In this document: positions 2,861-64,000 of the stretch, in pieces
How the letters are laid out: each line of letters opens with the position of its first letter
Numbering within the stretch: the stretch's first letter is position 1
Origin: Basidiobolus meristosporus CBS 931.73
Taxonomy: Eukaryota > Fungi > Basidiobolomycota
Direction: 5' to 3'
Length of the DNA: 64,000 nt
NCBI GenBank assembly: GCA_002104905.1
Contig: MCFE01000108.1
Coordinates: forward strand, 104,835 to 168,834
Program-made: the position numbers and the translations under genes
Notes under the pieces: model-generated
Seen by the model: the letters and a program-made list of their open reading frames with translations, nothing else
The model's database searches: none
What the model was told of the DNA's origin: nothing

Positions 2861-2861
2861 T

Positions 2862-4938
2862 TTATTGCTGTTGAAGCTTTAGTTGTACCACAATTGCCAA
2901 TTGTATTGATCTATACAGGTCTCCATACCCTACACTAACATTATGCCCAACCCCATACTCAACAAGTAATTCCATTAAAATCCACCACTCAATAAGTATT
3001 TCTGCTGTAACGCTCTGGTTCCACAACTTTGGCAGGAACTCAATGGCTTTATGCCACTGTTCATTCACCGGTTCCCACACATCCTGGTTTTCAGCCAGCA
3101 CTGCAAGGTCTAACTCCTCATCTGCCAGATTTTGCAATAAATCCGTGCAATATTCCAGTGCATTTTCTTGAGCACTGCTCTTGAAGATGTGCTGCAACAT
3201 CTGGTTGTGCCTATCAATGTTCCAAGCTCCACTGAAGGCATTGTGATAGTCTTTTGAGCTCTTGATGTTGTAGCCTTGTCTGTCAGTGGGACCTCCACCT
3301 TGTCAACAATGGAGGCTGTGGAAGCTGCGGAGGCTGTGGTAGATAAATTGCCTTTTTCAGTAAACTCATCTACCATGCTGGAATGTAGCTCAACTGGCTG
3401 TGCTTCCGATTCTTGTGAAAACAGCATATTTCTTGTTGGTAATTCTTCTTGGCTATGATGGGTTTCAGTCTGTTCCTTGCTTGCCACGTAAATTGGCCAG
3501 AACTGCAGTCTTTTTTGCACGCCTCCCTGTTTCAGGCTTGGGTAGACATTTTTCCCTTTACCTTTTCCTTTATCACTACTGAGTGTCTCACTGCTACTTT
3601 GTCTGAGTGCTACTTGTAAAAAACTACACTTTCTCCTGGATAAATTCTGCTTTGATGCATCTGTTTTGGCCTGCCTGTCCCTTGCAGGCACTCTTCTGGC
3701 AACCTGATGTTTCTTTTCTGCTTGTTTTGAGCTCTCAACTGTAGTTGTGACAGGCTCCTGTAAAAGAGGCTGGTTTCTATCACTGCAAGGTCCTTCACTG
3801 CTACTTTGACTGGGTGCTTCTTGAGTGGCACTATGCTTTTTCCTTGATAAATGTTGTGCTGGTGCATCCATGTCTGCCTGCTTGTCCCTAATTGGCACTC
3901 TCCCAGCTGTCTGATGTCTCTTTGACACTTGTCTGGAGCTTTTGGCCCTGCTTGTAACAAGCTCTTGAGGAAGCAGCTGGTTTTTAGCCATGGCACCCAT
4001 GCTCTTCTGCCTTTGATAGCTACTGCTATTCTCAAGATACTTTCTTTGCATACCAAGGCTGGCCCAAAATCTGTTTGCCTGTTTGAAACCAGGATAATGC
4101 TCATGGAAAAAGTCAGTGCATTCTACTTGGCCTTGAGTTCCTAATGTTACCATGGTATGCTGGCCTTAAGGTGATGGCGTGCTAGACTTCTGACAGCCTC
4201 TTGTATATTAGCCCACTCTTCATTATTGCACTAAACAGCTTCATGGATCTTCAATGTTTTTTGATCTTTATGCTTTGGTGTAAACACCACATTGTCTCCC
4301 TCCCATGCTATGCTAGATTTTTCTGTGGGCTTTATCTTTGGGCACTGTGGTTGCGCTTCAAAGACTGTATGTTGTTCCTCTGCTGCTACATTGGGAAATG
4401 GCTCAATTCTTGGCTGTGACATTGACCTACTGGAGTACCCTCTTTGCAGCAAAGATACTGCTTTCTCTACCTGGGATATTGATTGCTCTACATGTATTAT
4501 CTGCTCATCCTGTTTCTGGACTATTTTCTGATTTCTCTGGGCCATTGCATCTATCCTATCTGCCACTGCACCTAATTGCTTCATTAATGCTTTGGTATGA
4601 GCTGACAACAGACTTGCTAATATGGGAGGTGGTGATGTTATCATGGCCACTTGCTGATCTTCAACTGAGGGTACTATGCTTGCTACATTCCCATCTGCCT
4701 GAGCATAATGGTCAGCTTGTGGCTTCACAGAGGTTCTCAATTGCCTACTTGACTGAGAGCCTGAGGAGTCTGCATTGTTACCTTCAATGGGCACACTGTC
4801 CACAGGGCCTGTTTTGGATGTAGCCCTGCTTGTTGCACTGAATGTCAAAGCAAGCTGTTGTCCAACCATTCTTCTGTTGCCATCAGCAGCAGGGTTTGGT
4901 TGAGAACCAGACAACTTTGCTTTATTTTTTGGTTGCAT
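2862..4938 (-). pseudogene. Disrupted accessory ORF of the CACTA-like element (Ser/Gln-rich, no recognised domain)
   Basis: Consecutive long minus-strand ORFs of 235, 347 and 112 aa in CpG-depleted DNA, next to a transposase. The 5' part is homologous to 42390-42830. Confidence 0.5.
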
Positions 4939-9032: not shown

Positions 9033-12000
9033 CTCCCACTCAGCTAAATGTTCATACTGACTAGTCCTAATTTTGACCCAAGATATTCAAGCTTATCTCT
9101 AGCTAATGGTTTGGTAAATATGTCTGCAATCATTTCATCTGTAGGACAATAAACTAAGCTAACTAAGCTCTTCTCTATAGCTTCATTTATGAAATGATGT
9201 CTAATATCTGTGTGCATAGTTCTAGCATGAAAAGTTGGATTTCTACCTCATTGTAAACATCTGTGATTATCTTGAAACAAAGTAATAGGCATATTTTGAC
9301 ATAGGCCTGAACCGGTAAAAAGCTTTCTTAAGCACATTTTTCTGTTGTAGCCTGACAGGCTGCCATGTACTCTGCCTCTGTGGCAGAAAGTGCTATGGTT
9401 GGCTGCTTTCTTGAATCTCATGAAATTGCTCCTTTACAGTAATGAAAGGTGGATCCTGTGGTGGATCTTCTGTCTTCTATATTTTGCCCACAATCAGCAT
9501 CAGAGTATCCCACAAGATCCTGTTCTGAATCCTTGTAGGTGTATCTTAAGCAAATATCAGCGGTTCCTTGTAGATATCTAAAAATCCACTTAACTGCTGC
9601 AATATGATCATATCCATAGTTCTAATTATGCTGGCTAACAACTCTCACGGGATATGAGATATCTGGACATGTTCCAAGCATAATATACATCACACTGCTG
9701 ATCCTAGATTGATAGGGAAAGTCAGTGCTTTCAGATGGCACCAAGCTCTCTTGATTTAGTTGAGTTTTGACCAAGTTAAGGTTTGTCTCCATTGGGGTAG
9801 CAGCTAGTTTACAGTCTTCTATTTGGTACTTCTTTAGTATATCTTGAATATACTTGGATTGGCTTAGGGTAATAGTCTGGGTACATCTGTCTATGGGGAA
9901 CTTAATCCCTAAGTAGTAACTGAGTTCTCCTAGATTGGACATCTTGAACACATTATATAGGCTGTATTTAGCCTCTTCCAATGTTACTAGGTTATTGGTG
10001 GCTATAATAAGATCATCCACATATAGAGCAAATAGAACTGGATTTGCTCTATCTGGCATATAATATATACTATGGTCAGCATTACTTCTTTTGAAACTTA
10101 AAGATTCAAATAAGAATATATCTTGCAATTCCAGGCTCTTGGTGATTGTTTGAGACCATATAGTGACTTTTTAAGCTTGCAGCCCCAATGGGAGTTATCT
10201 TGGTCAACAAGTCCATCAGGCTGGTCCATATACATGTCCTCATCAAGTTCTTTGTTTAAAAATGCAGTTTTTACATCCATTTGATGAATAAATGACTTGT
10301 ATTTGGCTGCAATAGCCAATATTAATCTGATGGAATTAAACTTGGCTACCAGTGCAAAGGTCTCAGTATATGTAAGTTCTTTTGTTTGAGAGTATCCATT
10401 GGCCACAAGTCTTGCTTTGTATCTTTCAACTTTACCATCAGCCTTGTATCTTGTCTTGAAGACCCATCTGCATCCAATTAATTTTTGGTTTATTGGTAAT
10501 TTGACCAAGTCCCAAGTTTGATTTTTCATCAGGGCCTAATGTTCCTCAGCCATTGCAGATCTCCAAAACTTTGTCTGAGGGCTATTTAGGGCCTCTTTTA
10601 CGGTCTGGGGTTAATCAATATGGACTGAATAGGCATAGGCTAAGTTTGTACCCTCATTGATATAATAATCTGGGCTATTTCTTGTCCAATTGGATATCCT
10701 GGCATTTGATACTGGAATGATCACTTTTGAAATATTCCTGGGCACTGATTCTGGCTGAACCATGGCTTTAGAGTCTGCAGGAGTGAAAGAACCTTCATTG
10801 TTTTGCTCCAAGTCAATCCTGACAATTGGTGGACTTGAAATCAGATTTTTGTCATCATCTGATATCATTTTTTGTGAAAATTCTAAATTTTCATCATACA
10901 ACACATCCCTGCATGCATTTTACCCTTTTTGGTTCAAATTTTGACTTATTTCTGGGCAGTTTCTTGCCATATGCTGTACACCTGAATATTCTTAGATGTT
11001 CTGCACTTAGTCTGTATCTATACCATACTTCAAATGGAGTAGAACCACAAAGTATTCTGATATAACTCCTACTTTTAAGATATACAGCAGTGGCAACTGA
11101 TTCTGCCCAAAAATCATAGGATAATATTTGATCATGGATCAGATATCATGCCATATCAATTATTGATCTGTTAGCACATTCTGCTACTCCAGTTTACTGA
11201 GCTTCTTCCTTTCTCTCCATGAAGTAGACCCATGTGTATCTTGTATAATAATCAATAAGTGTGACTAAAAACTTCATCCTGCCTAAGGATAAATTTTGCA
11301 TAAGTTCATACAGATCTGAGTGAATTAGATCTAATTTTTTCTTGGTTTTGATCAGCCCAGAGCTCTTGAACGGTTGTCTGGCTTGTTTCCCATATATGCA
11401 GGCTTCACAGTGCTCCAAATTAGCTGGAGGACCAATTTTTACTCTAGAAATTAGCTGATCTTTGCTCATCTTGCACAAATAATCAAAATTGATGTGCCCA
11501 AATCTCCTGTGCCAAAGCATTGGTGTTTCTTCATTTAAGTTACTTTTATTGGCTTCCAGATATGATGGAATATAAGTCAGCTTGTATAGATTCTGATCTC
11601 TGATACCCAAAGCAATATGGGCACCATTTTGATCAGTGCTCTTGCATCCAGAATTGTCAAAGCTGAAACTGAGTCCTTCTGCAGTGGCCTTGCTTACAGA
11701 TAGTAGGTTCTTGGCTATTTCAGGTACATAGAGTACTTCTTTAAAGGTCAGTGTATGGCTTCCTTCACTGCTCTGAAGGTTTACTTGGATAGTTCCTTTT
11801 CCCACTTCATCAAGTGATCTATCATCACCCATGAAAACCTTATTAATTGGAATTTCTTGATATTGAGTAAAAAGCTCTTTTTGGTGTGTAAAGTGTTGAG
11901 ATGCTCCAGAATTAATGTACCACATCTGAGAATCCCTATTTGTGGTCATATTTAGTGCAGATATGAATAGTCTATCATCAGTTGTTGCAGCATTTCCATA

Positions 12001-39476: not shown

Positions 39477-40086
39477 ACAGACCATCCACCAGTATCTGCA
39501 GAAGAATAATCTCCAGCTTTCCCTTGCAAAGACAGTATCTGTGGGTTCTCCTATCAACCTGGAGCACTCTACTCTACCTGCTCAAGTCTCTGCTACATAT
39601 CTTGGCTTTCCTTTCCTTGCCACTGGACTAGACTCAGGAGCACACTTGAAGACAAGAGTCATCCTGACAAGACAGGCTCTCCACAAGCTACTGGCTGTTA
39701 CTCCTCCTACAACTTTAGCTCCCAGCTGCCTTCTTCTACTCAGGTGGTTTGTCTTTCCTGTCATGGAATTTGGCTTACCACTTCTCTCTCTTGCTTCTAG
39801 AGACTGGATTAAACTTGACAGGTTTGCAGTCCAGTGCATTACCTCCCTGGTCCCTCATCTGCCTGAATGCCTCTACAAACATGCAATTTCTGGTGCTTTT
39901 GGGTTTATGCCCTATAAGATCAGACTTCTCTACCTTAGAACCAAAATTTACCTCAAACTTCAGTACTGTAACAATTTATCAGTCAAGGCCTAGAAGAGCA
40001 CTTACTACACTATCCCTGGCTCCTGCGGCAGTACCATACTTGGAGATTCAGATTTAAAAAGCTTGCTATTTATGTCATGCAGTCAT
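39477..40086 (+). mobile_element. Decayed internal fragment of the same LINE family as 61575-64000
   Basis: GSPINLEHSTLPAQVSATYLGFPFLATGLDSGAHLK...GAFGFMPYKIRLLYLRT is near-collinear with the post-RT region of the 61629 ORF. Both ends are missing. Confidence 0.92.
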
Positions 40087-41499: not shown

Positions 41500-42830
41500 C
41501 AATTTACCAAATGGTAATTCCATTTGCTACCACCCCTTGTACCATTTGTATATTCCATAATAGAATTATCCCAATATGTTTGCTAGCCCACTACAACTAT
41601 AGGTATTCCACCTATAGTTTGAATCAAAATAACTATGGCCTCCTGCATACTAACCTCTACATATATGCACACTCACTGCAATTGACACTCTTCTGTCACC
41701 TCAACTTTACATCTTCAAAGTGTGATGCTTGCAAAGTTGCCATATACCTTGTATGGCTGGTAAAATATATATCTTGCAAACAAATGCTGGGTTGCTGCCA
41801 CTTTTGCCATGAATACCTCCTGAATATCTGCTAAATACTTTTTGATAATTAGCCAATATATTCCTTCTCCCTGCTGGATACTAGTCCCCCCTATAGGTGT
41901 GCTCTGGCACCTGTTTATATGAATTTCATACTGATAGGTGTAGAAACTGGCTTTTACCTGCAAGAAACTTGGCATACTTTGGTAAATATGTCCTAATAAC
42001 TAGTTGCTTGTTGTGGCCAACCCAACTTTGCTTTACTTAACTGATTACCCATGCATTGGGGCTGCTTAACCTCTTAATACCTAAGAAATAGGTGTCTCCA
42101 TGTGCACATCAGTCCTCAATATTTTCCAGCTCTTCCTGGCTGCCCTCCATGTGCCATCTTATCACATCCATGAGAGACTTGAGTGTAATATGCCGGATGA
42201 GATTAAGATATGGTAGTGCCTGCAACTTGACTTGTTGTCCTATCTCCCCACACATCTGCACCATAGGAAGCTGCCAAAAGGTGAAGCAAGGCCCAATATT
42301 TTCCACAGACCAAGCAAGACAGAGTAGAGAATGCATACCATCACGGCAGAGATCTACGCATTCAGCTTTATGTTAGTAGCATAGCTGCTCAAATAGAATA
42401 AATCTGTGGTACCACATACTAACATATATGTAACACTATTTCCCATCAGGTTTGACTTGCTTTCATATATATGCTGCCAGAAAATAAAGCAAAGTTGTCT
42501 GTTTCCCAACCAAACTGCACTGCTGACAGCAACAGAAGAATGGTTGGACAACAGCTTGCTCTTACAATCTGTGCAACAAGCCTGGATACATCCAAAAAAG
42601 GCCATGTTGATTGTGTGTCCATTGAAGGTAAGAATGTGGACTTCTTATGCTCTCTGTCAATTAGGCAACTGCATATCTCTGCAGAGCTGCAAGCTGATCC
42701 TGATGTTCAGCCAGATGAAACTGTGGCATATGCATTACCTTGGGTGGAAGACCAGCAAATGATTGCCATAACATCACCACCACCAGTATTAGCAAGTATG
42801 TGGTCAGCTCTGTTGTGCATCAACATTTAA
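41500..42830. mobile_element. Internally deleted CACTA copy: transposase C-terminus (minus) plus accessory ORF 5' part (plus)
   Basis: The minus strand gives TFWQLPMVQMCGEIGQQVKLQALPYLNL, resembling the CACTA W-x-x-P-x-ER..PY.NL block. The plus-strand 42471 ORF is homologous to the 4938 ORF (NKAKLS.SQPN..AD.NRRMVGQQLALT). Confidence 0.7.
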
Positions 42831-43799
42831 ACTTGGCCAGCTTTACTCTGTCAGAAAATCTTGTGCACTAGCTGATTTTCCCTAACCCAAACATAACTAA
42901 TACCTGTTATGGCTTATTGTATTACTTCTTAGAATCAATTTTTAGCAGCTACACCTGATCAATTTTCATGTGGTTTATATGTCTTCATCTGCTAAGCCTT
43001 TCCAAGTGATTAGTCATCTGAGATCTATCCAACCACTTAGCAGTTGCCAAGACATCAGCTGATTGATGATGCAACTTTCCATTATCATATGTGCCTATCA
43101 ACATCCAAGCTGATTTCAATTAGTCCAGCCTCTTGGTGCTTACTAATTCAACTTAATCAGAAAGCTTAAATAAAGCTTACTGTATTGTTTAGTTTACTGG
43201 GTGTCTCAACAGAGGTAAGAACTCAACAACTACATTCTAGTTTCTACCCAAGCCTAGCATATCTAGCACTCCTAAGAACACAAAGCCTAGCCTGCATAGC
43301 AAACCAGCTCTGTTGCCTTTATAGCCAAACCCAGCTTTATACAAGACCAACATAATACCAGAACCTCACTGTTAATATTTCTGCCACTCTCTACAATTCT
43401 AAGACTCTGCACTTAGTTGTCATTAATGTACCGTTAAGCCATTCAAGGAGCTTTATTACACTTTTCTCTTAGATACAATATTTTTTTGGTTGAATTCCAT
43501 TACATTCAACCACTTTACAATATGTCCTCAGCAGCAAGAAATCTAAATCTTTCCATGTTGGAAGAAGCCCAAAGAAATCAGGGAGAACTGACTGACAGCT
43601 TGAAAACATCATGCATGAAAGAAACACCTTGATGCTTGAGCACTCAAAGCTTACCAAGACATGATCTGACAATCATTGTAGAGATGAACTCCTTGAAGTT
43701 ATATCTGGATATCAATAGAAATTGGAATTATCAAAGAAGCTCTACAGAATGTTGCCTTAGTAATTGACAGCATTGAAAATCTGACAAGCCTTGCACTGC

Positions 43800-46250
43800 A
43801 TTTGCAATCAAGAAGTCATGCCTTTGGATTCTCCAGATCTACATCTCCCTCTAGACCTGACCTCATGGTTGTCATAAGATCCTTACCTCTTCATGCTGAA
43901 GGAGCCAATGCCATAAAGAATCCTACTGAGTTTCTTTTCAAGTTTAGCCATGTCTTAGATTCACACCAGCTAAATCCTGCCACCAATTGGGATAGACTTC
44001 TGCCTCTCTGTTTCACCATGCAAGATGCTTACTGGGCTGAAGTGAACATTCCCTCCAGCAGTATGTGGAATATTGCCCAAAGCCTCTTTTGCAGCCATTT
44101 TGAAGTTCCTCTCAAGAAAGCACATCTGAACTGCAACTTATGGAAAACTAAAATGCAAATCAGTGAATCTGAGCAACATTTCTGTGATAGATTTTAGCAA
44201 CAATTGAGATTAGCAGGAGTTGGCAATGATAATCCGTTGCTTACTTCTCATTTTCTTTCAAAATTTTCACACCAGCTACAGAGCAATATTGCTATTTTCA
44301 GAGCATGCAACCCTGCACATACTTATGACAAGATCTCAGAGACATGTACTCTTGTAATTACCATGACTGCAGCTGTTGGCCAGACTTCAGGCAACTCCAC
44401 TCAAGATCAAGCAATAACCAGAAAAGTGGCCAGTCATGTGACCAAGAAGAAGTCAACCTCTACCAAGCATTGTGAGCTTCATGGAAATTCTACCATTCTA
44501 TCAGTGAATGCAAAGGTATTACCAAGCAGTCAAACAAGTCAGTAAGCACTTCAGAGAAGCAGCAAAAACACCAAAACTGATAATACATATATGGATGACA
44601 AATGTTCTAAGTGTGGAAAGATTGGACATTGAACACCTGCCTGTCCTGAAAAGAATTCTACACCATTTGCAAGAATTACTCAGATCCTAGATGAAAATTC
44701 AACCAATGATATGACAGGGTATGTGGAAGCATATGAAGAGCTTACAATTCAAGATTACCACAATCTCTATGAATTTTGGGCTAAAATTACCACTGTTCAA
44801 GAAAAGAAGCAACCAATCACACAGCTAAAAGCCATAGAGGTGCCACTCAAACTCAACAGCCTGTCATCTGCAGCAATACTGGATTCTGGATCATCCAACT
44901 CTATTGCATCACCTAATGTAGTCAAAGAACTCAAATTGGAAATAGAAAAGCAACACAAAAAAATCATACTTGTAGCTAAAGGCCTCTCATCCCCAAGAAT
45001 TGGTATCACCAACCCAATCAGCATATGTTGTGGCTCAATAACTATAATCCATCAAATGGAAGCTATTGACATTCCAGGTGGACCTCAGGTAGTTATTGGT
45101 CTAGACACCTTCACCAAACTTAGCATTTGCATAGGCAGACTACCAATTTCCTATCCTGGAATCACTAAATCTCAGCCACCCATAATGAATCAGATTCCAG
45201 AAATTATCTCACCCCATCCAGAAGAAGAGGAGTCAACCCCAACTTTTCAAGCATATACCCAATCTGTCAAATTAGATACTCAGCCAGCCATAGACAGAAA
45301 CTAAGCCAATCCAAAAAATAGTTTCTGCACTATGCCAGAATCCATTGCTTCACTAGAAACCCAACCTGGTGAGTCAACAAGGAGGAGACAATACCCAATT
45401 TGGCATTCATGTCAGCACTAAGTTGATGAACAAGTCCAAAGTGGGCTGGAAATGGAATTATCACTCAAGCCCCTGTCAACACAATATTAAACAGCCCATT
45501 GACACTTGCACCCAAGAAAGAAGCTGATGGAAATCTAACACTGAAGAGACCATGTTTGGACCCTAGACCTCTGAGCAAACTCCTCCAAGATGATAAATAT
45601 CCAATTCCAAGAATCCAGGATATCTTTTCCTCACTATCTGGGGCCAAAGTATTCTTCCAAGTTGGACTTGAAGGATGCATATCACCAATTTGGCCAAATA
45701 TCTAAGCTGACTGCCTAGAATTTGTCCAGTCTTGCATAGAATGTCAACTTTACAATATCAGCTGCCATGGATTTCACCCTTTGAGTCCCATCTGTGCAAG
45801 CCCTCCTATGGGTCATATTGCAATTGATCTAGCAGGATTTTTCACCACTAGGGTTGATAGTAGTCACTACCTCTTTGTAATTATAGATGTCTGCACACAT
45901 TTTGTCTTCCTCAAAGCTATCCTAGACAAGTATGCTGCCACTATTACACAAGTACTATTCAAGCTCTTCTGCCTCTTTGGTTTCCCTATGGTCATTCAAT
46001 TTGTTAATGGAGCAGAATTTGTGAATCATGGGGTCAAAGCCCTTTGCGATAATAGTGCCATTGATCACCATCTGATCACTCCATATCATCCCAAGGCTAA
46101 TGGACCTGCTGAAAGACATGATTAGACCTCAGTGAGCATCATCAGGAAATCTATCAAAGGTATCAAGAAGAGTTGGGACAAGTATGTTCCAACTGTAAAA
46201 TATGCTATCAGCACCAAAATTGCTGCTCTAAATGCTGGTATTCACATGTT
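43800..46250 (+). mobile_element. Ty3/Gypsy retrotransposon remnant with an internal deletion of most of RT/RNase H
   Basis: Gag (NPTEFLFKF; knuckle CSKCGKIGH*TPAC), protease (ILDSGSSNS), RT start (RPCLDPRPL..DDKYPIPRI..LSGAKVF..LDLKDAYHQ), then integrase (HIAIDLAG..LFVIIDVCTHF..FGFP..TPYHPKANGPAER). Confidence 0.9.
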
Positions 46251-53600: not shown

Positions 53601-54604
53601 AGGTTGACGGGCTTACGTGTTCCAACACGCTACCTTTCTGGATTTGCTTGGTGTCGGTTACTTTGCGGCCGGTGCTCTCGCCGTACCTCAAGAGTAACTG
53701 GGCGCCCCAGATGCAAGAGCTCAGAAGAATTCAATTGATGCCTACATGGTTGTCCATCACAGTGTTTCATTGAACAGCTCGTTTGATTCCAGTTTTCTAC
53801 AGCGCATCCAAGCCTGGTTGTGCTCTCCACCGGGTATCAATGTCACTGGTAAGATACCAACTCACTCGGAGTTGCAGGTTGTGATTGGGCTGGGAGAGGC
53901 GTACAAAATTGGGGCTAATAAGTGGTTGCAAAGTGGATAGAATACGATCGACTTAATCCCGTCAGTAGCTCAAAACGAATCTCCAACATGATGGTGACTA
54001 GGAATGCGATGTTTCAAACAAAATTTAACTTGGAATATTGACCAACGATATGCGTACAACTCCATTGGCTGGAGAAGTCTCCTGTTTTACAACTTTTATT
54101 GAAATTGATGGAATTTCAATGGGCCCGAAATGGATATCCTCTGGATTTGTTGGCTCTTCGTTTTTCCCCAACGAAATTCATGGTTTATGATATATCGGGT
54201 GACCTTTCATGGAGGCCGTGGATTTTGTTATATAAGAGCGCCAGCGCGGCCCTTACTGGCCATTTGATAATACTCGGCTCTACAAGAGTTGCCTTGATCC
54301 TCACGTTCCAACATTACCTCAATCATCCTTGAATAGGATACCGTGTTCATTGTTCCCCATTGAAGTATTCATCCTTTGTGTCGTTGTTCTCTCCTTGGCG
54401 TCAACTTCACAAGTTCTTGCTGAATACTGCTGCATACAACCTTCTTTCCTTTCACCACTCTCGAACTAGTATTGTTGGAAGCATATTTGGCTGGTTCCCT
54501 GCTGTGTTTGGTCGATTATTAAGGTCTAACTAATTCCAGAGTCAAGATAGTTTATCAACCCCACCTCCCTTGCTTTTCCCACTCGCTCCCAGTTGTACCT
54601 AATC

Positions 54605-57600
54605 ATGGGCTACTCCTCCTACTCGTCTTCATACTTCCAACCAATTCCTGAAAATTCCAACCCAAACGTGAAGAAGCGCAGTTTCGACATGATTCCGCAA
54701 GTCTCCTCGATCCCTGTTTATCATCGCCACAACTCTCACAACGATCCCCTATTGTCCTCGGAATCCAACTGGATAACCGAGCTAAGCAGCGGCGATCTGT
54801 CCTATTCCGAGCCTGCTACCCCTAGCCTCATGAACTCCGGCAGTTTGTGGACGTACGGCTCCGATGTCCCAACACCATTGCAAGAGATGAAGCTGGAAGG
54901 CTTTGAGCCCACGTTGGACATGGCATCGTTAGTCCCTGGCACACTTCCCAAACAGGAAAGCTTCGGGCTCGTCTTTCCATTTGATGATTTTGAGTGCAGA
55001 GCTGGATCGTTCGATGACCATAGCAACATGCACCTGCAATCACATTCTCTGATTCGCTCACATCCCTCCACATCTCCAAGTGAGTGTTCTCAATCATTTT
55101 CGTCGATTCATGACTCGTCACTTGCCATGCACGATGGCATGCTATCGAATGCCATGGACCAGCGGCAATTGAGAAACATCCAGTTCAACCGTGTGCGGAT
55201 GGCGTCGGAGAATCACTCCGAGTTCAGCAGTTCTATGACCAGCCCCGTGGACTCCGGTTTCTGCACTCCTATCGATAGCTACACATCAAGCCCTGTTCTT
55301 CACCATTCAACCGTAAATACAAGAAGCTATTTCCCTTCGGAATACATTGACACCCATCGACGCCCTAGCATCTCTACCGGCCTCCAGTCGCTCCACATGG
55401 CAGACGAGATGTCCTTAAACTCTGCACTTTCCATGACACAAGCATCATCATCATTGTCTGCCCCACTTTCCATCAACTCTTTCCTAGATGCAAACCATGA
55501 TATACCTGGTGCACTGCTGCATTCCTCCGATCCTCTGGGTGTGGTTAATGGCCACTTCTATAATAACAAGCTTCATTTAGACCAACATTCGGCCTTCATG
55601 AATCCGACGCACGAAGATATTATGAGTGGAGGCGGTGGGCACAATTCAACTTACGGGTTCCATGACGGCGCCCCTCCACCCCCCACATTGTCGCCACCTT
55701 CCTCGCCAAACACTGAAAATAGATGCACTCCTGTCTCACCTGCCAACGGCTTAAATTATTCTCTGGGAAACAAGATCGAACTGAGTCAAAACACTCACCT
55801 ATCACTGAAGCCTCTCGTTCATAGCTACGTGTCACCGACCACCAACCCACTCCTCAATGGGGAGAAGACTGTTGTTATTCTGACGTCTAAAGTCGCCCAG
55901 AAGTCATACGGCACTGAGAAAAGATTTCTATGCCCTCCTCCTACTGTCCTGCTTCTGGGTCAAAATTGGCGTGTTAACACCTTCCCCAAAAGCGGATCTC
56001 CCAATGAGGGTTCCACTTTGGTAAGCCCAAAGCTTACCATCGGCATCCCTGGAGAGTCTGGGCAGCAGCAAGGGGTGTTGGAGTGGTCCGGACCATCTAG
56101 TCCCACCGTCGATTCCAATGCACCAGAATCAACCTCTGTCGGGAGGTGTGTGGCCAAGCATCTGTTCATCAATGACGCTGATGAGAAGCGCAAACGGGTG
56201 GAAGTGATGGTGAACGTCCAGTCTTCCTCAGGCCAACCGGTGGGTACTTTCGTCTCCAAGCCTATCAAAGTGATTTCCAAGCCTTCCAAAAAGCGGCAGA
56301 GCGTCAAAAATATGGAGCTCTGCATACACCATGGCACGACCATTTCTCTTTTCAATCGGATCCGATCGCAAACCGTATCCACCAAATATCTTGGGGTTTC
56401 CTCTCCATCCGCATCCACGTTTGGCAATGCCAAGTGGCCAGCCAACATGAATCACATTGGGTCTCCGAGTGATTCAGCTTGCTTTGTTGCTAGGACTGGG
56501 CGCTGGGACCCGTTTGTTATATGGCTGGTGGACTTGAACAAGAGAAACCTGCCGCCTTCCGAACAGACATCAACCCTTCCTCCTCCTGGCTTCCCGGCTC
56601 CTCCAACCATTGCCGTGCAACCTCAGGAATATGCGATGTCCTTTTCACCTGGCTCCGATTCGAGAGTTAACTCTGATGGCAAATCTCCAATCCCCATCCA
56701 TTACAACCAGCCCGTTGTGCTGCAGTGCCTTTCAACAGGTTTGATCAGCCCGGTAATGATCATCCGTAAGGTTGACAAAGGTAGTCTCGTGGTTGGGACT
56801 GGAACTGGAACAGGCCGTGAGGAGATGCTTGGAGACCCAGTTTCGCAGTTGCACAAAGTCGCGTTTCAAATCGTGGAGGACATGGTAGAGGAAGAGACCC
56901 CGTTCCCAATTCGGCCTACAGCTGGCTCGTATCTTGTTTGCTTGGGCGACGTTGTTGGTGTGCAGCGCTCGAACGAGGGTCGCAAATTTGACACACCGTC
57001 CGCCAAAAAGGTACCATCCCGTTCTGAATCCCTACCCAATGTCTTGGAGCATTCTTACGAAAACTTGCCTAATGGGACCGCTGCCAATGAGGGTGATAAT
57101 GGCACACGCAAAAGACGTGCGCCCACGTCCGCTGCTAGTGGGCCACCCATGAAAGCCTCCAAGGCTGGTAGAAGGAATTCTATTAGAGAAGACCTTCTGT
57201 CAGGTAATGACTCTGCCCTGCAGAACATGTGGTCTGAGGATGTGTCAGACACAGCCGTTTGGACAATCGTTGGTACTGATTGTGTGCAATACTCATTCTA
57301 CACGCCCAACTCCAACACGCACGGTGATGAATCCAGTATAAATCCCATTACTCCCATTCCTTATATCACACACATTATTCCTTCTACACAAAGTGGCGGA
57401 TCCAGCATCCTCAGCATTTACGGTGAAAACCTTACTGCTGATCTTTCGGTTTGGTTTGGGGAGACGCAGAGCAAAGTCACCGAATTCAAAAGCCGGGAAA
57501 GTATAGTTTGTGCCCCACCCGCCCCTGGACAAAACGGAGCCGCAGAAGAAACCTCATTCCCAATCTTGCTGGTCAGAAGCGACGGAGTTGTATTTAAAAC

Positions 57601-57622
57601 CGGTAAATTCTACACGGTTTAA
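54605..57622 (+). CDS. Fungal CSL (LAG-1/RBP-J family) transcription factor, probably class F2 (Cbf12-like), about 1005 aa, intronless
   Basis: LAG1 DNA-binding block VVILTSKVAQKSYGTEKRFLCPPP, KVISKPSKKRQS, beta-trefoil LCIHHGTTISLFNRIRSQTVSTKYL, and C-terminal Ig-like IYGENLTADLSVWFG..PILLVRSDGVVF. It has a ~400 aa Ser/Pro/His-rich N-terminus. Confidence 0.96.
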   Translation: MGYSSYSSSYFQPIPENSNPNVKKRSFDMIPQVSSIPVYHRHNSHNDPLLSSESNWITELSSGDLSYSEPATPSLMNSGSLWTYGSDVPTPLQEMKLEGFEPTLDMASLVPGTLPKQESFGLVFPFDDFECRAGSFDDHSNMHLQSHSLIRSHPSTSPSECSQSFSSIHDSSLAMHDGMLSNAMDQRQLRNIQFNRVRMASENHSEFSSSMTSPVDSGFCTPIDSYTSSPVLHHSTVNTRSYFPSEYIDTHRRPSISTGLQSLHMADEMSLNSALSMTQASSSLSAPLSINSFLDANHDIPGALLHSSDPLGVVNGHFYNNKLHLDQHSAFMNPTHEDIMSGGGGHNSTYGFHDGAPPPPTLSPPSSPNTENRCTPVSPANGLNYSLGNKIELSQNTHLSLKPLVHSYVSPTTNPLLNGEKTVVILTSKVAQKSYGTEKRFLCPPPTVLLLGQNWRVNTFPKSGSPNEGSTLVSPKLTIGIPGESGQQQGVLEWSGPSSPTVDSNAPESTSVGRCVAKHLFINDADEKRKRVEVMVNVQSSSGQPVGTFVSKPIKVISKPSKKRQSVKNMELCIHHGTTISLFNRIRSQTVSTKYLGVSSPSASTFGNAKWPANMNHIGSPSDSACFVARTGRWDPFVIWLVDLNKRNLPPSEQTSTLPPPGFPAPPTIAVQPQEYAMSFSPGSDSRVNSDGKSPIPIHYNQPVVLQCLSTGLISPVMIIRKVDKGSLVVGTGTGTGREEMLGDPVSQLHKVAFQIVEDMVEEETPFPIRPTAGSYLVCLGDVVGVQRSNEGRKFDTPSAKKVPSRSESLPNVLEHSYENLPNGTAANEGDNGTRKRRAPTSAASGPPMKASKAGRRNSIREDLLSGNDSALQNMWSEDVSDTAVWTIVGTDCVQYSFYTPNSNTHGDESSINPITPIPYITHIIPSTQSGGSSILSIYGENLTADLSVWFGETQSKVTEFKSRESIVCAPPAPGQNGAAEETSFPILLVRSDGVVFKTGKFYTV

Positions 57623-59150: not shown

Positions 59151-60019
59151 CCAGTTGACAATAATCTAAATTGAGTGATCAACATGTGGGGTAACTGGTC
59201 CCGAAATTCAATCAGATGCTGCTCATAAGGGTTAACATTCTTCCATATCGCCTTAAATCCCCAACAGACAAATCGAAGTTTTACTACTTGGCCATACTAA
59301 GCTCATCCACAAACGCTGACGCAACTGTGACGTTAGCAAAATATCAAATTCCCCATTATAACGATACGCATATATCACGAGGTATTTCACAAATCCTCCT
59401 GATACCTAATGTAGAAGGTTGCTTTCTGCACACCCGTCATTAGTCGTCTCACACTTGGTGAATCTAAGTGGCTGATGCTCTCGTTATCCTCGTACTGGTT
59501 AATTCTGAAATTGCTTGGCTATTTTCGGTGATGAATCTGAGACCATTCTTAGTGTGTAGAAAAATAATCACCCGTGGAGCTTTAGCAATTAGTGGCAATA
59601 ATAATGTATACATATGTGGATTGTTGGATCAAGTACTGATGTGCATTGACAGAAATTAGATTTTTGTTTTACTGTACTCTATTCAAGTCCCACTTACAAT
59701 GATTTCATCTGTTCATAGTTTGTTCAGTACTTTGTTTAAATGTATTTACTGCTGTTTCTGGTCTATTTCATTAAAATAATTGGTTACGCTCACATATACA
59801 TGCTTATTTCGAAGTAGAGCACAAATTCAGGTCATATCCATCATTGAGTTAGAATTAAAAGTTGCTATTGGCATAGCATTCAGAATTAAATTAATTTAAA
59901 AAATCTAAATAATACAAAGATATATTTAACTCAACACTTTGTTACTCATAACCTTTACTGCAAGTATAGGTGCTCACTCTTAGACTTTTCTGATGATAGC
60001 ACATAAAATACATAGGGTT

Positions 60020-60540
60020 GGGGGAGGAAAGTGACCAAGTGGTGAAGTCTTTATTTACTTATGACAAGCATCTAAAGAAGCCAAGTTAATCTGAAGTTAA
60101 TCCTAGAAAGCTAGGCCTGATAGATATCTTCCTGGTAAGCCAGGTCTGAGAGTTGAGAAGCTGAGTTGTACTATATTTCCTAGTTAGCTAGGTCTGAGAG
60201 AGGTTTCCTGGAAAGCCAGGCCTGAGAAGTGAGAATCTGAATATATCTGAGGGGAGTTGTGCTGGTTTGCGGAAGCTGATTTTTGGTTTAAATGGCCAGC
60301 AGACTGGTGGAACTGAGGACACCTTTTAGGCAATCACCAGCCAAGTTTACCAGGCAAATCTAACCAATTAGCATTTCAAGGATTTCAGCCAATCAGAGAA
60401 TTTACTTTGCCTGATGGTTGATCAGGCCATCTCTCAATGAGCACACATCAATTTATTAATCAAATTTTGTTGGATCCAGGATTTGAACCCACAACCATGG
60501 GTATGGAAGGGTTAGGGATAACCACAAGGCTAAGTGTTCT
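60020..60540 (-). mobile_element. tRNA-headed SINE-like element, copy 1 (full length)
   Basis: Minus-strand A box TAGCCTTGTGG (60532-60522) and B box GGTTCAAATCC (60489-60479). No long ORF, a 3' end shared with the LINE, and telomere-like G-rich flanks. Confidence 0.85.
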
Positions 60541-60546
60541 TGGTTA

Positions 60547-61070
60547 GGGGGAGGAAAGTCACCAAGTGGTGAAATCTTTATTTACTTATGACAAGTATCT
60601 AAAGAAGCCAGCTAATCTGAAGTTATTCCTAGAAAGCTAAGTCTGAGAGATATCTTCCTGGTAAGCCAGGTCTGAGAGTTGAGAAGCTGAGTGGTACTAT
60701 ATTTCCTAGTTAGCTAGGTCTGAGAGTGGTTTCCTGGAAAGCCAGGCCTGAGAAGTGAGAATCTGAATATATCTGAGCTAAGTTATACTGGTTTGCGGTA
60801 GCTGAATTGTGGCCGGAATGGCCAGTAGACTGGGGGAACTGAGATGTATTTCTGGGCAATCACTGGCCAAATTTACTAGGCAAATCTGGCCAAGTAGCAT
60901 TTCAAGGATCTCAGCCAATCAGAGCCTTTACTTTGCCCGATGGTTGATCAAGTCATCTCCCAATGAGCACACATCAATTTATTAATCAAATTTTGCTGGA
61001 TCCAGGATTTGAACCCACAACCATGGGTATGGAAGGGTTAGGGATAACCACAAGGCTAAATGTTATTGGT
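60547..61070 (-). mobile_element. tRNA-headed SINE-like element, copy 2 (full length)
   Basis: Tandem copy of 60020-60540 (offset 527 nt). A box at 61058-61048, B box at 61015-61005. Confidence 0.87.
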
Positions 61071-61071
61071 T

Positions 61072-61097
61072 GGGTTAGGGGAGGGAGGGTTAGGGGG
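61072..61097 (+). repeat. Telomere-like linker GGGTTAGGGGAGGGAGGGTTAGGGGG
   Basis: Read directly from the sequence; lies between SINE copy 2 and the truncated LINE. Confidence 0.85.
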
Positions 61098-61221
61098 AGA
61101 CAGTCACCAACAGGTGAAATCTTTATTTCAGTTGAAACAAAGAAGCCAGCGCTACTGTTGTAGCTTTGATACAAGAGTGTGTAGCTGAGGGGAATTTGTA
61201 GGTAAGTTAATAAGAAGTGAT
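61098..61221 (-). mobile_element. 5'-truncated LINE copy (3' terminal ~124 nt)
   Basis: Identical by eye to 61575-61698. Confidence 0.95.
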
Positions 61222-61245
61222 GGGTTAGGGTTAGGGTTAGGGGGG
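61222..61245 (+). repeat. Canonical telomeric tract GGG(TTAGGG)3GGG
   Basis: Read directly from the sequence; begins exactly at the LINE truncation point. Confidence 0.95.
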
Positions 61246-61558
61246 AGGAAAGTCACCAAGTGGTGAAATCTTTATTTACTTATGACAAGTATCTAAAGAA
61301 GCCAAGTTAATCTGAAGTTATTCCTAGAAAGCTAGGTCTGAGAGATATCTTCCTGGTAAGCCAGGTCTGAGAGTTGAGAGGCTGAGTTGTACTATATTTC
61401 CTAGTTAGCTAGGTCTGAGAGAGGTTTCCTGGAAAGCCAGGCCTGAGAAGTGAGAATCTGAATATATCTGAGCTAAGTTATACTGGTTTGCGGTAGCTGA
61501 ATTGTGGCCGGAATGGCCAGTAGACTGGGGGAACTGAGATATATTTCTGGGTGATCAC
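61241..61558 (-). mobile_element. SINE-like element, copy 3 (5'-truncated)
   Basis: Nearly identical to the 3' ~315 nt of copy 2. It stops at ..GATCAC and is followed directly by TTAGGGTTTAGGG. Confidence 0.9.
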
Positions 61559-61574
61559 TTAGGGTTTAGGGGGG

Positions 61575-64000
61575 AGACAGTCACCAACAGGTGAAATCTT
61601 TATTTCAGTTGAAACAAAGAAGCCAGCGCTACTGTTGTAGCTTTGATACAAGAGTGTGTAGCTGAGGGGAATTTGTAGGTAAGTTAATAAGAAGTGATGA
61701 TAGTTCTTCAGTGCTCAAGACACTGTTCAGTGGGAAGGGGGGTAGCAAGAGAGGTAAGAATGACTTGTGAACAACATCAATGAGGGGAATGTGATAAGGA
61801 TTGATATTCATCATAAAGGGAGTGTGCTGCTGCAGATATTGCTGCCAAAGGTCTGTCAAGTACTTCATGTAGGCCAGCTTGGGTTTTTCTGACTGCAGAA
61901 TATAGTGTGCAAACTTCTTGACTTCAGGATCTCCAAGTATAGTTCTCCAGCAGGAGCCAGGTGTTGTGTGGTGTGTTCTCTTCCAGGCCTTAATCAGTGG
62001 GTTGCTGCAGTTGTGAAGTCTGAGGTATAATCTGGTTCTAAGGTAGAGAAGTCTGATCTTATAGGGCATAAACCCAAAAGCACCAAGAATAGCATGTCTG
62101 TAGGGGCATTCAGGCAAATGAGGCACCAAGGAGGTAATGCACCATACTGCAAACTTGTCAAGCTTAGTGCAGTCACTAGAAGTAAGAGAGAGAAGTGGTA
62201 AGCCAAATTCCAGGACAGGGAAGACAAACTGCTTGAGTAGAAGGAGGCAGCTGGGAGCTGAAGTTGTAGGAGGAGTAACAGCCAGTAGCTTGTGGAGTGC
62301 CTGTCTTGCCAGGATAATTCTCTTCTTCAGGTGTGCTCCAGAGTCTAGTCCAGTAGGAAGGAAAGGAAAGCCAAGATATGTAGCAGAAACCTGAGCAGGT
62401 AGAGTGGAGTTCTCCAAGTTGATGGGAGAGCCCAAAGGTACTGTCTTTGCAATGGAAAGCTGGAGATTATTCTTCTGCAGATACTGGTGGATGGTCTGGG
62501 AGTCTTGTTGCACATTGGAGGAGGATATTCTGATGTCATCAGCAAAGAGAGTAACCAGGCAGTCAGCTGAGAGTCTTGGGAAATCATTCAGGAAGATGGC
62601 AAACAGTATAGGACCAAGCACAGAGCCTTGAACCACTCCATTAGGAACTGAGAACACAGCTGATTGCTCACTTGGGTGCAGAATTCTTGCTTGTGGATCC
62701 AGAAACAGAGACCTGACAAGGAGGGTGAGAGAGGTACTGGAGAAGCATTGCAACTTGGACCAAAGCAGATTTCTGTCAACTGAATCAAAGGCCTTAGTAA
62801 TATCAAACAGAACTGAGGGATACTTGCACTGGAGAGAGTGATCTTGGCTAAGTATGACTGCATATTCCAAGGAGAGGCCAGGAACAAAGCCAAACTGTGC
62901 AGGATGAAACTTGAGGGAGTCAGAGTAGAGCTCCTGAGCAAGCAGAAGCTCAAACACCTTTCTGCAGGTGGGCAGCAGAGATATTGGCCTGTAGGAGCTA
63001 GGATCCAGGTGCTTTCCTTTACCCTTGTACAGTGGCAGAACATTTGCAAAGGACCATTCCTCAGGAGTAGAAAGCTGGGCTGAGCATTGTTGAAACAGTG
63101 GAAGCAGAAGTGCAGACATGGCCTTGGTACTAGTCTTCAGAAGCTCATAAGAGATTGTGTCCACACCTGGAGCAGTAGAGTTGGGAAGCCTCTTGAGCAC
63201 ATTATGGATTCTCCTTTGATCAAGTGCAAGTGGGATGGGCAGAGTCTTGAAGTCAGGATGAAAGCCAGGAGTTGAGTACTGCTTTGTAGAGAAGAAGATG
63301 TTAGCCAGCTGTTCTGTTGAAGGTAACTTCCTGGAAGAGGGCCTCATTGCCCTGTAGAGTCTCGATACTGTTCTTGTTATAGAGTTGGAAGATTGCAGAG
63401 GCAAAGAACTCATAATATGATCCCAGAGCTGAGTATGCAGAGTGTGGTGAATTGCCTTGGAGTGATGTATTGCTGTCAGGAGGAGTTTCTCTGTTTTTGG
63501 GTTAGGGAAACTCAGGTAGCTTTGTTGCAGGGCTGAAACAATGGATTCCCATTTTCTTGAGGTAACAGCAGTAGTCTTGCATGGCAGTGAGAGGGAGGCA
63601 GACACCAGAATCAGATGCTTCACAAAGAGCCAGGCATAGTTGAGATCATCTGGCAGAGAAAGTAGCAAACTGGCAAGCTTCAAGTAGTTCCCAAAGTCTT
63701 TCTTCTGATTCTTGGTAGCTTTGTGGGTGAGCACAGTAAGCTTTGGCAGCTTCTTCTTCACAACTGGTTGCATAGAAAGGGACCAGGCTGGGTGGTCAGA
63801 GGCTCTCAAGGATCCTAGCTCAGCTCCAGAGAATTGCCTAACTTCATTCACAAAGTAGAGGGCAGCAGCAGAAGGGCAGATCCAGTCAACACATCTTTTC
63901 TCAGATTGAGCACCTAGTGCTAGCAGATGGCTTTCTCTCAGGAAGTTCAGTAGGAATGTAGACCTTGGCTTCATTTTTGCAGTCAGAGTAGTCTTGTTCT
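61575..64000 (-). mobile_element. APE-type non-LTR retrotransposon (LINE), apparently intact, 5' end outside the window
   Basis: Uninterrupted ORF with a ~55-nt 3' UTR, no poly(A), ending in CCCCCCTAAACCCTAA on the sense strand. Confidence 0.95.
61629..64000 (-). CDS. LINE endonuclease/reverse transcriptase (more than 781 aa; frame stays open to the window edge)
   Basis: RT motifs APGVDTI, YRPISLL, QFGFVPG, FDITKAFDSV, GVVQGSVLGPILF, LFADD and LSIAKT. The N-terminal RCVDWI...SDH fits the end of an APE endonuclease domain. Confidence 0.95.
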   Translation of the reverse strand, partial: NKTTLTAKMKPRSTFLLNFLRESHLLALGAQSEKRCVDWICPSAAALYFVNEVRQFSGAELGSLRASDHPAWSLSMQPVVKKKLPKLTVLTHKATKNQKKDFGNYLKLASLLLSLPDDLNYAWLFVKHLILVSASLSLPCKTTAVTSRKWESIVSALQQSYLSFPNPKTEKLLLTAIHHSKAIHHTLHTQLWDHIMSSLPLQSSNSITRTVSRLYRAMRPSSRKLPSTEQLANIFFSTKQYSTPGFHPDFKTLPIPLALDQRRIHNVLKRLPNSTAPGVDTISYELLKTSTKAMSALLLPLFQQCSAQLSTPEEWSFANVLPLYKGKGKHLDPSSYRPISLLPTCRKVFELLLAQELYSDSLKFHPAQFGFVPGLSLEYAVILSQDHSLQCKYPSVLFDITKAFDSVDRNLLWSKLQCFSSTSLTLLVRSLFLDPQARILHPSEQSAVFSVPNGVVQGSVLGPILFAIFLNDFPRLSADCLVTLFADDIRISSSNVQQDSQTIHQYLQKNNLQLSIAKTVPLGSPINLENSTLPAQVSATYLGFPFLPTGLDSGAHLKKRIILARQALHKLLAVTPPTTSAPSCLLLLKQFVFPVLEFGLPLLSLTSSDCTKLDKFAVWCITSLVPHLPECPYRHAILGAFGFMPYKIRLLYLRTRLYLRLHNCSNPLIKAWKRTHHTTPGSCWRTILGDPEVKKFAHYILQSEKPKLAYMKYLTDLWQQYLQQHTPFMMNINPYHIPLIDVVHKSFLPLLLPPFPLNSVLSTEELSSLLINLPTNSPQLHTLVSKLQQ

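Follow-up and report, generated by a model that had tools for sequence, protein, structure and literature searches.

Telomere-repeat-punctuated arrays of a candidate telomere-directed LINE and SINE pair in the fungus Basidiobolus meristosporus

The last 4 kb of a 64,000-nucleotide stretch of the genome of the fungus Basidiobolus meristosporus CBS 931.73 (contig MCFE01000108.1, forward-strand positions 104,835 to 168,834; hereafter the window, to whose numbering all coordinates refer unless a locus or contig is named) consists of an array of retroelements separated by short TTAGGG-type sequences. The array is built from two elements: a long interspersed nuclear element (LINE), which encodes a reverse transcriptase (RT) and a predicted apurinic/apyrimidinic endonuclease (APE)-type nuclease, and a short interspersed nuclear element (SINE)-like non-coding sequence whose 3' end is homologous to that of the LINE. 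Both are confined to chromosome ends, where they lie in a single orientation. These results support the core of the original prediction, made from the window sequence alone, that the array belongs to a telomere-directed LINE and SINE pair in a fungus.

We searched the genome assembly (89.49 Mb in 1,366 contigs) for both elements and found 421 candidate copies of the SINE and 763 of the 3' half of the LINE. Scored SINE copies are mostly 94–98% identical, and scored LINE copies are about 99% identical. An exact-word search with up to two mismatches located 510 SINE 3' tags (471 forward and 39 reverse) and 929 LINE 3' tags (842 forward and 87 reverse), and the telomeric word (TTAGGG)8 has the same strand bias as both element tags (5967 forward versus 62 reverse). 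Distances to contig ends were obtained from word matches and contig sizes for the 60 contigs that carry the first 100 LINE tag matches in contig order; the long-contig set comprises 23 contigs of more than 100 kb, with a total length of 4.29 Mb. On these long contigs the distance from a tag to the contig end that its 5' end faces never exceeds 18.2 kb for the 38 LINE tags (median 4.1 kb) or 18.3 kb for the 19 SINE tags (median 5.1 kb), and the remaining ~93% of the long-contig set is free of LINE tags. Directly past the outermost element, 19 of the 62 loci from this genome run into 18–39 terminal TTAGGG units (median 32). The geometry of a right chromosome end that had been read from the window, with the G-rich strand on the plus strand and element 5' ends pointing toward the end, is thus also that of the long contigs genome-wide, and mapping the two elements relative to chromosome ends places their tags terminally and in one orientation.

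From the (TTAGGG)8 counts, the contig ends capped by telomere repeats number about 240 or more, and almost all of them are right ends. No telomere repeats were seen at left ends (ten contig ends checked), so chromosome sizes cannot be inferred from the assembly and complete small chromosomes are not supported. The one-sided telomere orientation looks like an assembler habit, and the many capped ends reflect either very many chromosome ends or many uncollapsed terminal contigs.

Two segments depart from the common orientation. One is a LINE/SINE array on contig C781 (55353-60778; locus L054) that is inverted and sits ~10 kb inward of a right-end telomere; an end-to-end rearrangement could explain it, as could a palindromic artefact of long reads. 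The other is an old (86.6% identity) internal LINE fragment within the window itself (39478–40085; element positions ~319–927), which is likewise inverted, has no 3' tag and lies about 24 kb inward from the window's right edge, where the contig ends.

Array coordinates in the window were read directly and checked by script, and elements were delimited by BLAST with a single full copy each of the SINE and the LINE as reference. Unique AT-rich DNA extends up to position 60012. The array then fills 60013–64000 and presents, in plus-strand order, SINE1, SINE2, a 3' stub of the LINE, a 5'-truncated SINE3 and a LINE, all on the minus strand. This is the order and strand originally predicted, but the last element is not the full LINE that it was taken for: the right edge of the window is the end of the contig (C91; 168,834 bases), and this 2.43-kb copy (61575–64000, minus strand; 99.3% identical to the reference copy) is the 3' 2,429 nt of a ~4.56-kb element.

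The innermost junction (J1; 60013–60024, plus strand) reads TAGGGTTGGGGG and links unique DNA with SINE1 at its 3' end; the array is based on unique DNA with just one or two degenerate telomere units. A 12,310-nt Illumina unitig from the same sample (depth ~105) spans J1 from the unique flank into SINE1, showing that this junction is not a long-read assembly artefact. SINE1 (60025–60543, minus strand) is a full-length, clearly older copy with 90.5% identity to SINE2. Its 5' end is joined to the 3' end of SINE2 by J2 (60544–60551, plus strand; TTAGGGGG), for which GGTTAGGGGG, corresponding to 60542–60551, had been given earlier. SINE2 (60552–61069, minus strand) is a full-length, non-coding element of ~520 nt with at least 78 scored copies elsewhere at 94–98% identity. 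It is followed by J3 (61070–61097, plus strand; TTGGGTTAGGGGAGGGAGGGTTAGGGGG), in which the inner GGGGAGGGA may be the few-nucleotide abortive start of a third family, recognizable by a GGGAGGGAAAGTCACC tag and described below. The LINE stub beyond it (61098–61222, minus strand) retains only the last ~125 nt (125–128) of the element, an extreme 5' truncation, and is 100% identical to the reference copy. J4 (61223–61245, plus strand), GG(TTAGGG)3GGG, is the sole perfect multi-unit tract of the window. It separates the stub from SINE3 (61246–61558, minus strand), which is the 3' 312 nt of the SINE (97% identity by BLAST), and J5 (61559–61574, plus strand; TTAGGGTTTAGGGGGG) leads into the terminal LINE. 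All five junctions are of the TTAGGG type, as predicted, and the array in the window has neither poly(A) nor a target-site duplication, which also agrees with the earlier description. Within the window, perfect TTAGGGTTAGGG is confined to the array, and telomere-type dodecamers with one mismatch number five against 0.14 expected.

The full-length LINE, described from the copy on contig C573 (loci L036 and L062), is ~4.56 kb long and consists of a 5' untranslated region (UTR), a first open reading frame (ORF1), an in-frame stop and ORF2. The 5' UTR has an internal CCCTAACCCTAA ~150 nt from the 5' end (L062:590-760, L019:1214-1450, L042:467-700) and a ~95-nt monomer that is tandemly duplicated in some copies, in what looks like a 5' variable-number tandem repeat or promoter-monomer arrangement. 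ORF1 encodes 502 amino acids from its first methionine, with a coiled coil as well as a zinc-ribbon-like CX2C...CXC motif, and matches no Pfam family. ORF1 and ORF2 occupy the same frame and are separated by a single stop (L036:4321-4329 on C573). All of the 30 copies from this genome have TGA CTA as stop and following codon, three relatives (L123, L124 and L125; 48–63% amino acid identity) have TGA CTA or TGA CTC, and the APE domain begins straight after the stop without a methionine. UGA-CUA is a known readthrough-prone context. Together with the shared frame, it makes an ORF1-ORF2 fusion through stop readthrough plausible on sequence grounds.

ORF2 encodes 922 amino acids and is intact at most loci. 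Its C-terminal 789 codons (amino acids ~134–922 of 922) lie in the window at 61629–64000 on the minus strand, with the last part of the APE domain at ~63789–64000 and the RT domain at ~62364–63002. The LINE 3' two-hairpin module follows at 61581–61620 on the same strand (hairpin 1, 61597–61620; hairpin 2, 61581–61594). The ~99% identity between LINE copies, combined with their intact ORFs, suggests a system that looks recently active.

The first 210 residues of ORF2 contain the APE motifs LLLNCNS, LIDV, YLPP, GDLN, VDW and SDH, which are kept in four lineages that are only 44–55% identical. In all four the metal-binding Glu of other LINEs is Asp (LIDV). The Pfam family Exo_endo_phos_2 matches the ORF2 N terminus at 22.6 bits, below its cut-off. 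An AlphaFold model of the domain (mean predicted local distance difference test score, pLDDT, 79.5) retrieves APE-fold nucleases in Foldseek at probability 1.00. The top match is the telomere-specific endonuclease of TRAS1 (1WDU; E 5e-10), with APE1 and the L1 endonuclease barely behind. The conserved catalytic motifs and the modelled fold together identify the ORF2 N terminus as a predicted APE-type endonuclease, in line with the original assignment of the LINE.

The RT domain (RVT_1; E 2.6e-25) has the active site FADD and is of the type without long terminal repeats (non-LTR). In a sequence search of the PDB its best solved relatives are human L1 ORF2p (E 6e-13) versus R2 (E 0.09). We found no restriction-enzyme-like endonuclease (REL) domain, Pfam being empty over the C-terminal 281 amino acids and no RHD...E...KPD motif being present there, and no RNase H in the LINE. 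An exhaustive HMMER search returned five close clusters (49–97% identity), among them contigs from other sequencing runs with the same tail. Beyond these, similarity drops to ~30–37% identity over the RT only, to arthropod and Mucorales proteins; ten such outgroup matches that we looked up include Tribolium, a pseudoscorpion and Parasitella. The ESM Atlas yielded generic APE plus RT clusters only. None of the PDB, ESM Atlas and HMMER comparisons assigns the RT to a clade, the PDB search separating only L1 from R2. Within ORF2, four diverged lineages encode FPNPK by TTTCCCTAACCCAAA (63493–63507 in the window, minus strand). On an outside contig (L125:5636-5665) the junction between an element tail and a 5'-truncated copy falls exactly on this motif, indicating that it can serve as junction microhomology.

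The SINE, the most common of the passengers, is ~520 nt long, lacks an ORF and is homologous to the LINE over its 3' ~60 nt. In SINE2 this module (60552–60612, minus strand) comprises hairpin 1, hairpin 2 (TCACC/GGTGA), CTTTCCT and a C-run. The layout common to both elements is TGGCTTCTTT, a variable apical part, AAATAAAGATTTCACC, a 4–6-nt loop, GGTGA, ~7 nt, a C-run and TAACCC. For RNAalifold we took six lineages: the LINE, the SINE, both other tagged families and a pair of outside relatives. It predicts one hairpin of 11 bp and one of 5 bp, with compensatory changes at two pairs and the other pairs invariant or changed on one side only. The LINE 3' end alone (89-nt fold) is more stable than its shuffles (z = -2.8). 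In sense orientation, LINE and SINE, the two other families and the outside relatives all have a 3' end consisting of a C-run followed by TAACCC(TAA), and these relatives (48–80% amino acid identity; other sequencing runs) end in the same CCCCCTAACCC. The common module suggests that the SINE is a passenger recognized by the LINE RT, that is, a putative LINE-dependent partner with the same 3' end as the autonomous LINE.

In the SINE head, a perfect B box is preceded 32 nt upstream by an A-box-like motif, and a telomere-type motif lies between the two. In SINE2 these lie on the minus strand at 61005–61015 (sense GGTTCAAATCC), 61048–61058 (sense TAGCCTTGTGG, recognized from the RNA polymerase III type-2 promoter consensus) and 61034–61043 (sense CCCTAACCCT), respectively. 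ARAGORN detects no tRNA in the array region or the whole window, a search of Rfam at E ≤ 10 leaves the head without a match to tRNA, 5S or 7SL, and the head folds no better than shuffles (z -0.26). The tRNA derivation originally proposed for the SINE is therefore unsupported by all three approaches, and the likeness comes down to the B box and the A-box-like motif.

The same 3' module and tail recur in two further families (L062:1295-2130 and L062:3427-4001), which are recognized by the tags GGGAGGGAAAGTCACC and GGGATGATAATCACC. The first of these tags occurs at 24 junctions in the loci examined. Neither family has tblastn similarity to ORF2 or its relatives, and both are probably further non-autonomous passengers.

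We compared 140 distinct 3' junctions (52 of the LINE, 53 of the SINE and 35 of other tagged families). TTA directly precedes the G-run in 122 of them and TA in 133, and TTA plus the G-run behaves as an element-encoded tail. By a lenient count, internal junctions contain a median of 2 telomere-like units (two or fewer in 79%, maximum 8), compared with 18–39 in terminal tracts. The 5' truncations of the LINE fall at ~50 different points, ranging from 62 to 4069 of 4404 aligned nucleotides without a single duplicate, which indicates that the array members represent independent events. Telomere sequence resumes in register with the last 1–3 nt of the truncated element (for example T then TAGGG, TT then AGGG, A then GGGTTAGGG, or C then TTAGGG), and at some junctions the truncated end passes straight into the next G-run without TTA. 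Copies just 8–30 nt long sit between telomere units. The outermost elements, beside the terminal tract, are full SINEs or LINEs truncated at 84 to 3650 nt.

On balance, we think that the window probably ends in the inner portion of an array at a chromosome end, and that such arrays probably arose through many independent retrotranspositions of a telomere-specific LINE and its passengers, primed at eroded chromosome ends. The C-rich tail of the element RNA (...CCCCCC-UAA-CC) would pair with the G-rich 3' end of the chromosome, the preferred substrate being a telomere worn to 0–2 repeats or a broken end. The G strand continues into the antisense copies, implying that each cDNA was primed from a G-strand 3'-OH; the LINE RT would extend this 3'-OH, so that the antisense copy continues the G strand with its 5' end outward. 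Wherever the RT stopped, at full length, at a truncation or after 8–30 nt, the new 3' end would be reused through 1–4 nt of microhomology. The next step would be either in-register addition of TTAGGG by telomerase or pairing with another element RNA through its tail, so that we infer an alternation of retrotransposition with telomerase at the same free end. The outermost element would at last be capped by 18–39 TTAGGG units. The original prediction had raised the question of telomerase reverse transcriptase (TERT), and the genome does encode a Telomerase_RBD (40.5 and 34.7 bits, above cut-off; contig C935). We favour end priming because the internal tracts are very short, junctions form on arbitrary ends, abortive copies occur and the base of the array rests on unique DNA.

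Several points weigh against this reading. The window's contig ends inside the LINE, and following the array rightward, as had been suggested, does not reach a terminal TTAGGG tract; more generally, contig ends that lack such a tract are not proven chromosome ends. Copies are not significantly younger toward the outside (Spearman rho -0.17, p 0.23, n 52). The short internal tracts could result from later shrinkage. No RNA sequencing run was found to contain this stretch; the tail is read from DNA copies, and the RNA itself may carry a CCCUAA tail of another length or poly(A). Finally, the APE catalytic motifs are kept across the four lineages despite their 44–55% identity, suggesting that nicking matters, which fits an endonuclease-dependent route.

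Such a route, which we regard as possible but clearly less probable, is sequence-specific target-primed reverse transcription inside double-stranded telomere repeats, of the kind used by TRAS and SART: the APE would nick the G strand at TTA^GGG, the resulting ...TTA-3'OH would pair with UAA of the RNA tail, and the element would end up integrated in the tract. The conservation of the motifs (N, D, Y, GDLN, D, SDH) in diverged lineages, the modelled APE fold with the TRAS1 endonuclease as its top match and the TTA before the G-run at 122 of 140 junctions, as expected from a fixed nick site, all speak for it. However, random nicking within a tract of 18–39 units would leave proximal tracts of all lengths, whereas the observed median is about 1–2 units and the maximum 8. 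Nor does a fixed nick site account for junctions on arbitrary truncated ends without any TTA, or for an array base on unique DNA with one or two degenerate units. Retention of an APE domain is also compatible with end addition, since Drosophila TART keeps its APE domain yet adds to chromosome ends. In addition, several junctions could be created in a single event by template jumping, in which the 5' end of a first RNA is left for the tail of a second.

It is very unlikely that the arrays were spread or enlarged mainly by subtelomere recombination (unequal exchange or break-induced replication) with the elements as passive cargo. The same junction types do occur on several contigs, for example SINE 5' end, TTA, LINE 3' end, and the inverted array ~10 kb inside the telomere on C781 would fit such exchange. 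However, both truncation point and junction are private to nearly every truncated LINE, identity between copies is ~99% and the 922-amino-acid ORF is intact at most loci, and the junctions that recur are those of full-length ends, as independent events would yield too. An ordinary dispersed LINE and SINE with a CCCTAA-like microsatellite tail, biased to contig ends because assemblies break at repeats, has next to no probability left and is refuted for the sample examined by one-way orientation and terminal confinement: repeats do break assemblies, TTA plus the G-run beside the 3' ends does behave as part of the element and the old inverted LINE fragment does lie ~24 kb from a contig end, but assembly breaks would yield both orientations, whereas 91–92% of tags are on the telomere strand and 57 of 57 on the long contigs point outward, no tag lies in the inner ~93% of the 4.29 Mb, and true terminal tracts of 18–39 units lie beyond the arrays. 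Of the scenario that the original prediction had named as its own refutation, dispersed copies each with a CCCTAA tail, the element-borne tail is thus partly borne out and the dispersal is not.

The LINE, the SINE and the tagged passengers might together constitute a second RNA-templated system of end extension and healing that acts on the same 3' ends as telomerase, an idea that we put forward tentatively and hold to be rather doubtful. Element tails would then mimic the telomerase template, and the CCCTAACCCT(AA) motifs found in the head of the SINE and in the 5' UTR of the LINE, not far from the element 5' ends, would bring telomere repeats near the new terminus and so aid re-capping. Were this true, healing of eroded or broken ends would permit very many chromosome ends, on the order of the 240 or more capped contig ends.

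The remainder of the window contains other features of note. A gene for a CSL/Su(H)-type transcription factor (LAG1 DNA-binding, BTD and TIG domains) at 54593–57622 lies 2.4 kb from the base of the array, and there is no long subtelomeric repeat zone at that end. The protein shares 83% and 80% identity with proteins of Basidiobolus ranarum and 75% with a paralogue in B. meristosporus, its next relatives being in Glomeromycotina, Zoopagomycota and Mucoromycota, which places the genome in Basidiobolus. LTR-retrotransposon gene fragments lie at 11194–11949 and 44711–45304 and code for a Pol beta-barrel together with a GAG-pre-integrase domain and for an aspartyl protease. An element terminus that starts with TGTTGTGCATCAACATTTAAA is present at 42800–42900 and interrupts LINE copies at two other ends (L054:552 and L022:554); this terminus is probably that of an LTR or transposon with insertions in the arrays.

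Among known systems, the LINE resembles TRAS1 and SART1 of Bombyx mori (R1 clade) in combining APE and RT, in having two ORFs, in its fixed orientation within telomeric repeats and in coexisting with telomerase-type repeats, and the TRAS1 endonuclease is the top structural match of our model. TRAS and SART elements have a poly(A) end and a defined insertion site within long (TTAGG)n tracts. By contrast, the Basidiobolus LINE has a telomere-complementary tail, internal tracts of 0–2 units and a SINE partner. No A-runs were found at Basidiobolus element 3' ends, so that the arrays show neither the poly(A) nor the long-tract insertion of TRAS and SART, and arthropod LINEs are just ~30% identical to it over the RT.

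The closest parallel for the SINE is UnaL2/UnaSINE1 of the eel, a stringent LINE/SINE pair with a 3' stem-loop and a short-repeat tail, in which the tail repeat is arbitrary and non-telomeric and copies are dispersed. There, as here, the SINE bears the 3' stem-loop module of its LINE and the same short terminal repeat; the Basidiobolus tail differs in complementing the host telomere repeat, and both partners are found at chromosome ends only.

HeT-A, TART and TAHRE of Drosophila are similar in their head-to-tail arrangement with 5' ends outward, variable 5' truncation and pairing of non-autonomous with RT-encoding elements. They replace telomerase and are joined through oligo(A), whereas the Basidiobolus arrays have telomere-unit junctions, telomerase-type caps and a TERT RNA-binding domain in the genome. 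Replacement of telomerase of the HeT-A/TART type is ruled out by the Telomerase_RBD and the terminal TTAGGG tracts.

Fungal non-LTR elements that are restricted to chromosome ends and vary in 5' tandem repeats, as the LINE does, include MoTeR of Magnaporthe, FoTeR of Fusarium and Cnl1 of Cryptococcus, which belong to the CRE clade and have one ORF with a C-terminal REL endonuclease (PMC12857005). The Basidiobolus LINE differs from them in its N-terminal APE, its lack of a REL motif, its two ORFs and its SINE partner. The published fungal telomeric LINEs are REL-type (PMC12857005). Full-text literature searches found nothing on a telomere-specialized SINE or on Basidiobolus telomere elements.

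The tail itself has its nearest counterparts in the endonuclease-deficient Penelope-like elements Athena and Coprina and in the subtelomeric 'family 4' of Zymoseptoria tritici, in which all full-length copies have 1–3 TTAGGG at the 3' end (PMC4522978). These elements have short reverse-complement telomere repeats at the 3' end, which faces away from the telomere, and occur terminally as tandem truncated copies; pairing of the RNA tail with the G overhang has been proposed for them, as we propose here. They have no endonuclease and a Penelope-type RT, unlike the APE and non-LTR RT of the Basidiobolus LINE. Telomere-specific retroelements have thus been known as APE-encoding elements with poly(A) in insects, as a replacement for telomerase in Drosophila, as REL-encoding elements in ascomycetes and Cryptococcus, and as endonuclease-less Penelope-like elements. 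The Basidiobolus system joins features that have so far been found apart, namely an APE LINE with a telomere-complementary tail, telomerase and at least one abundant, end-confined SINE-like passenger. It could show how a LINE RT and telomerase share the chromosome 3' end, whether end addition needs the APE and how retroelements heal breaks.

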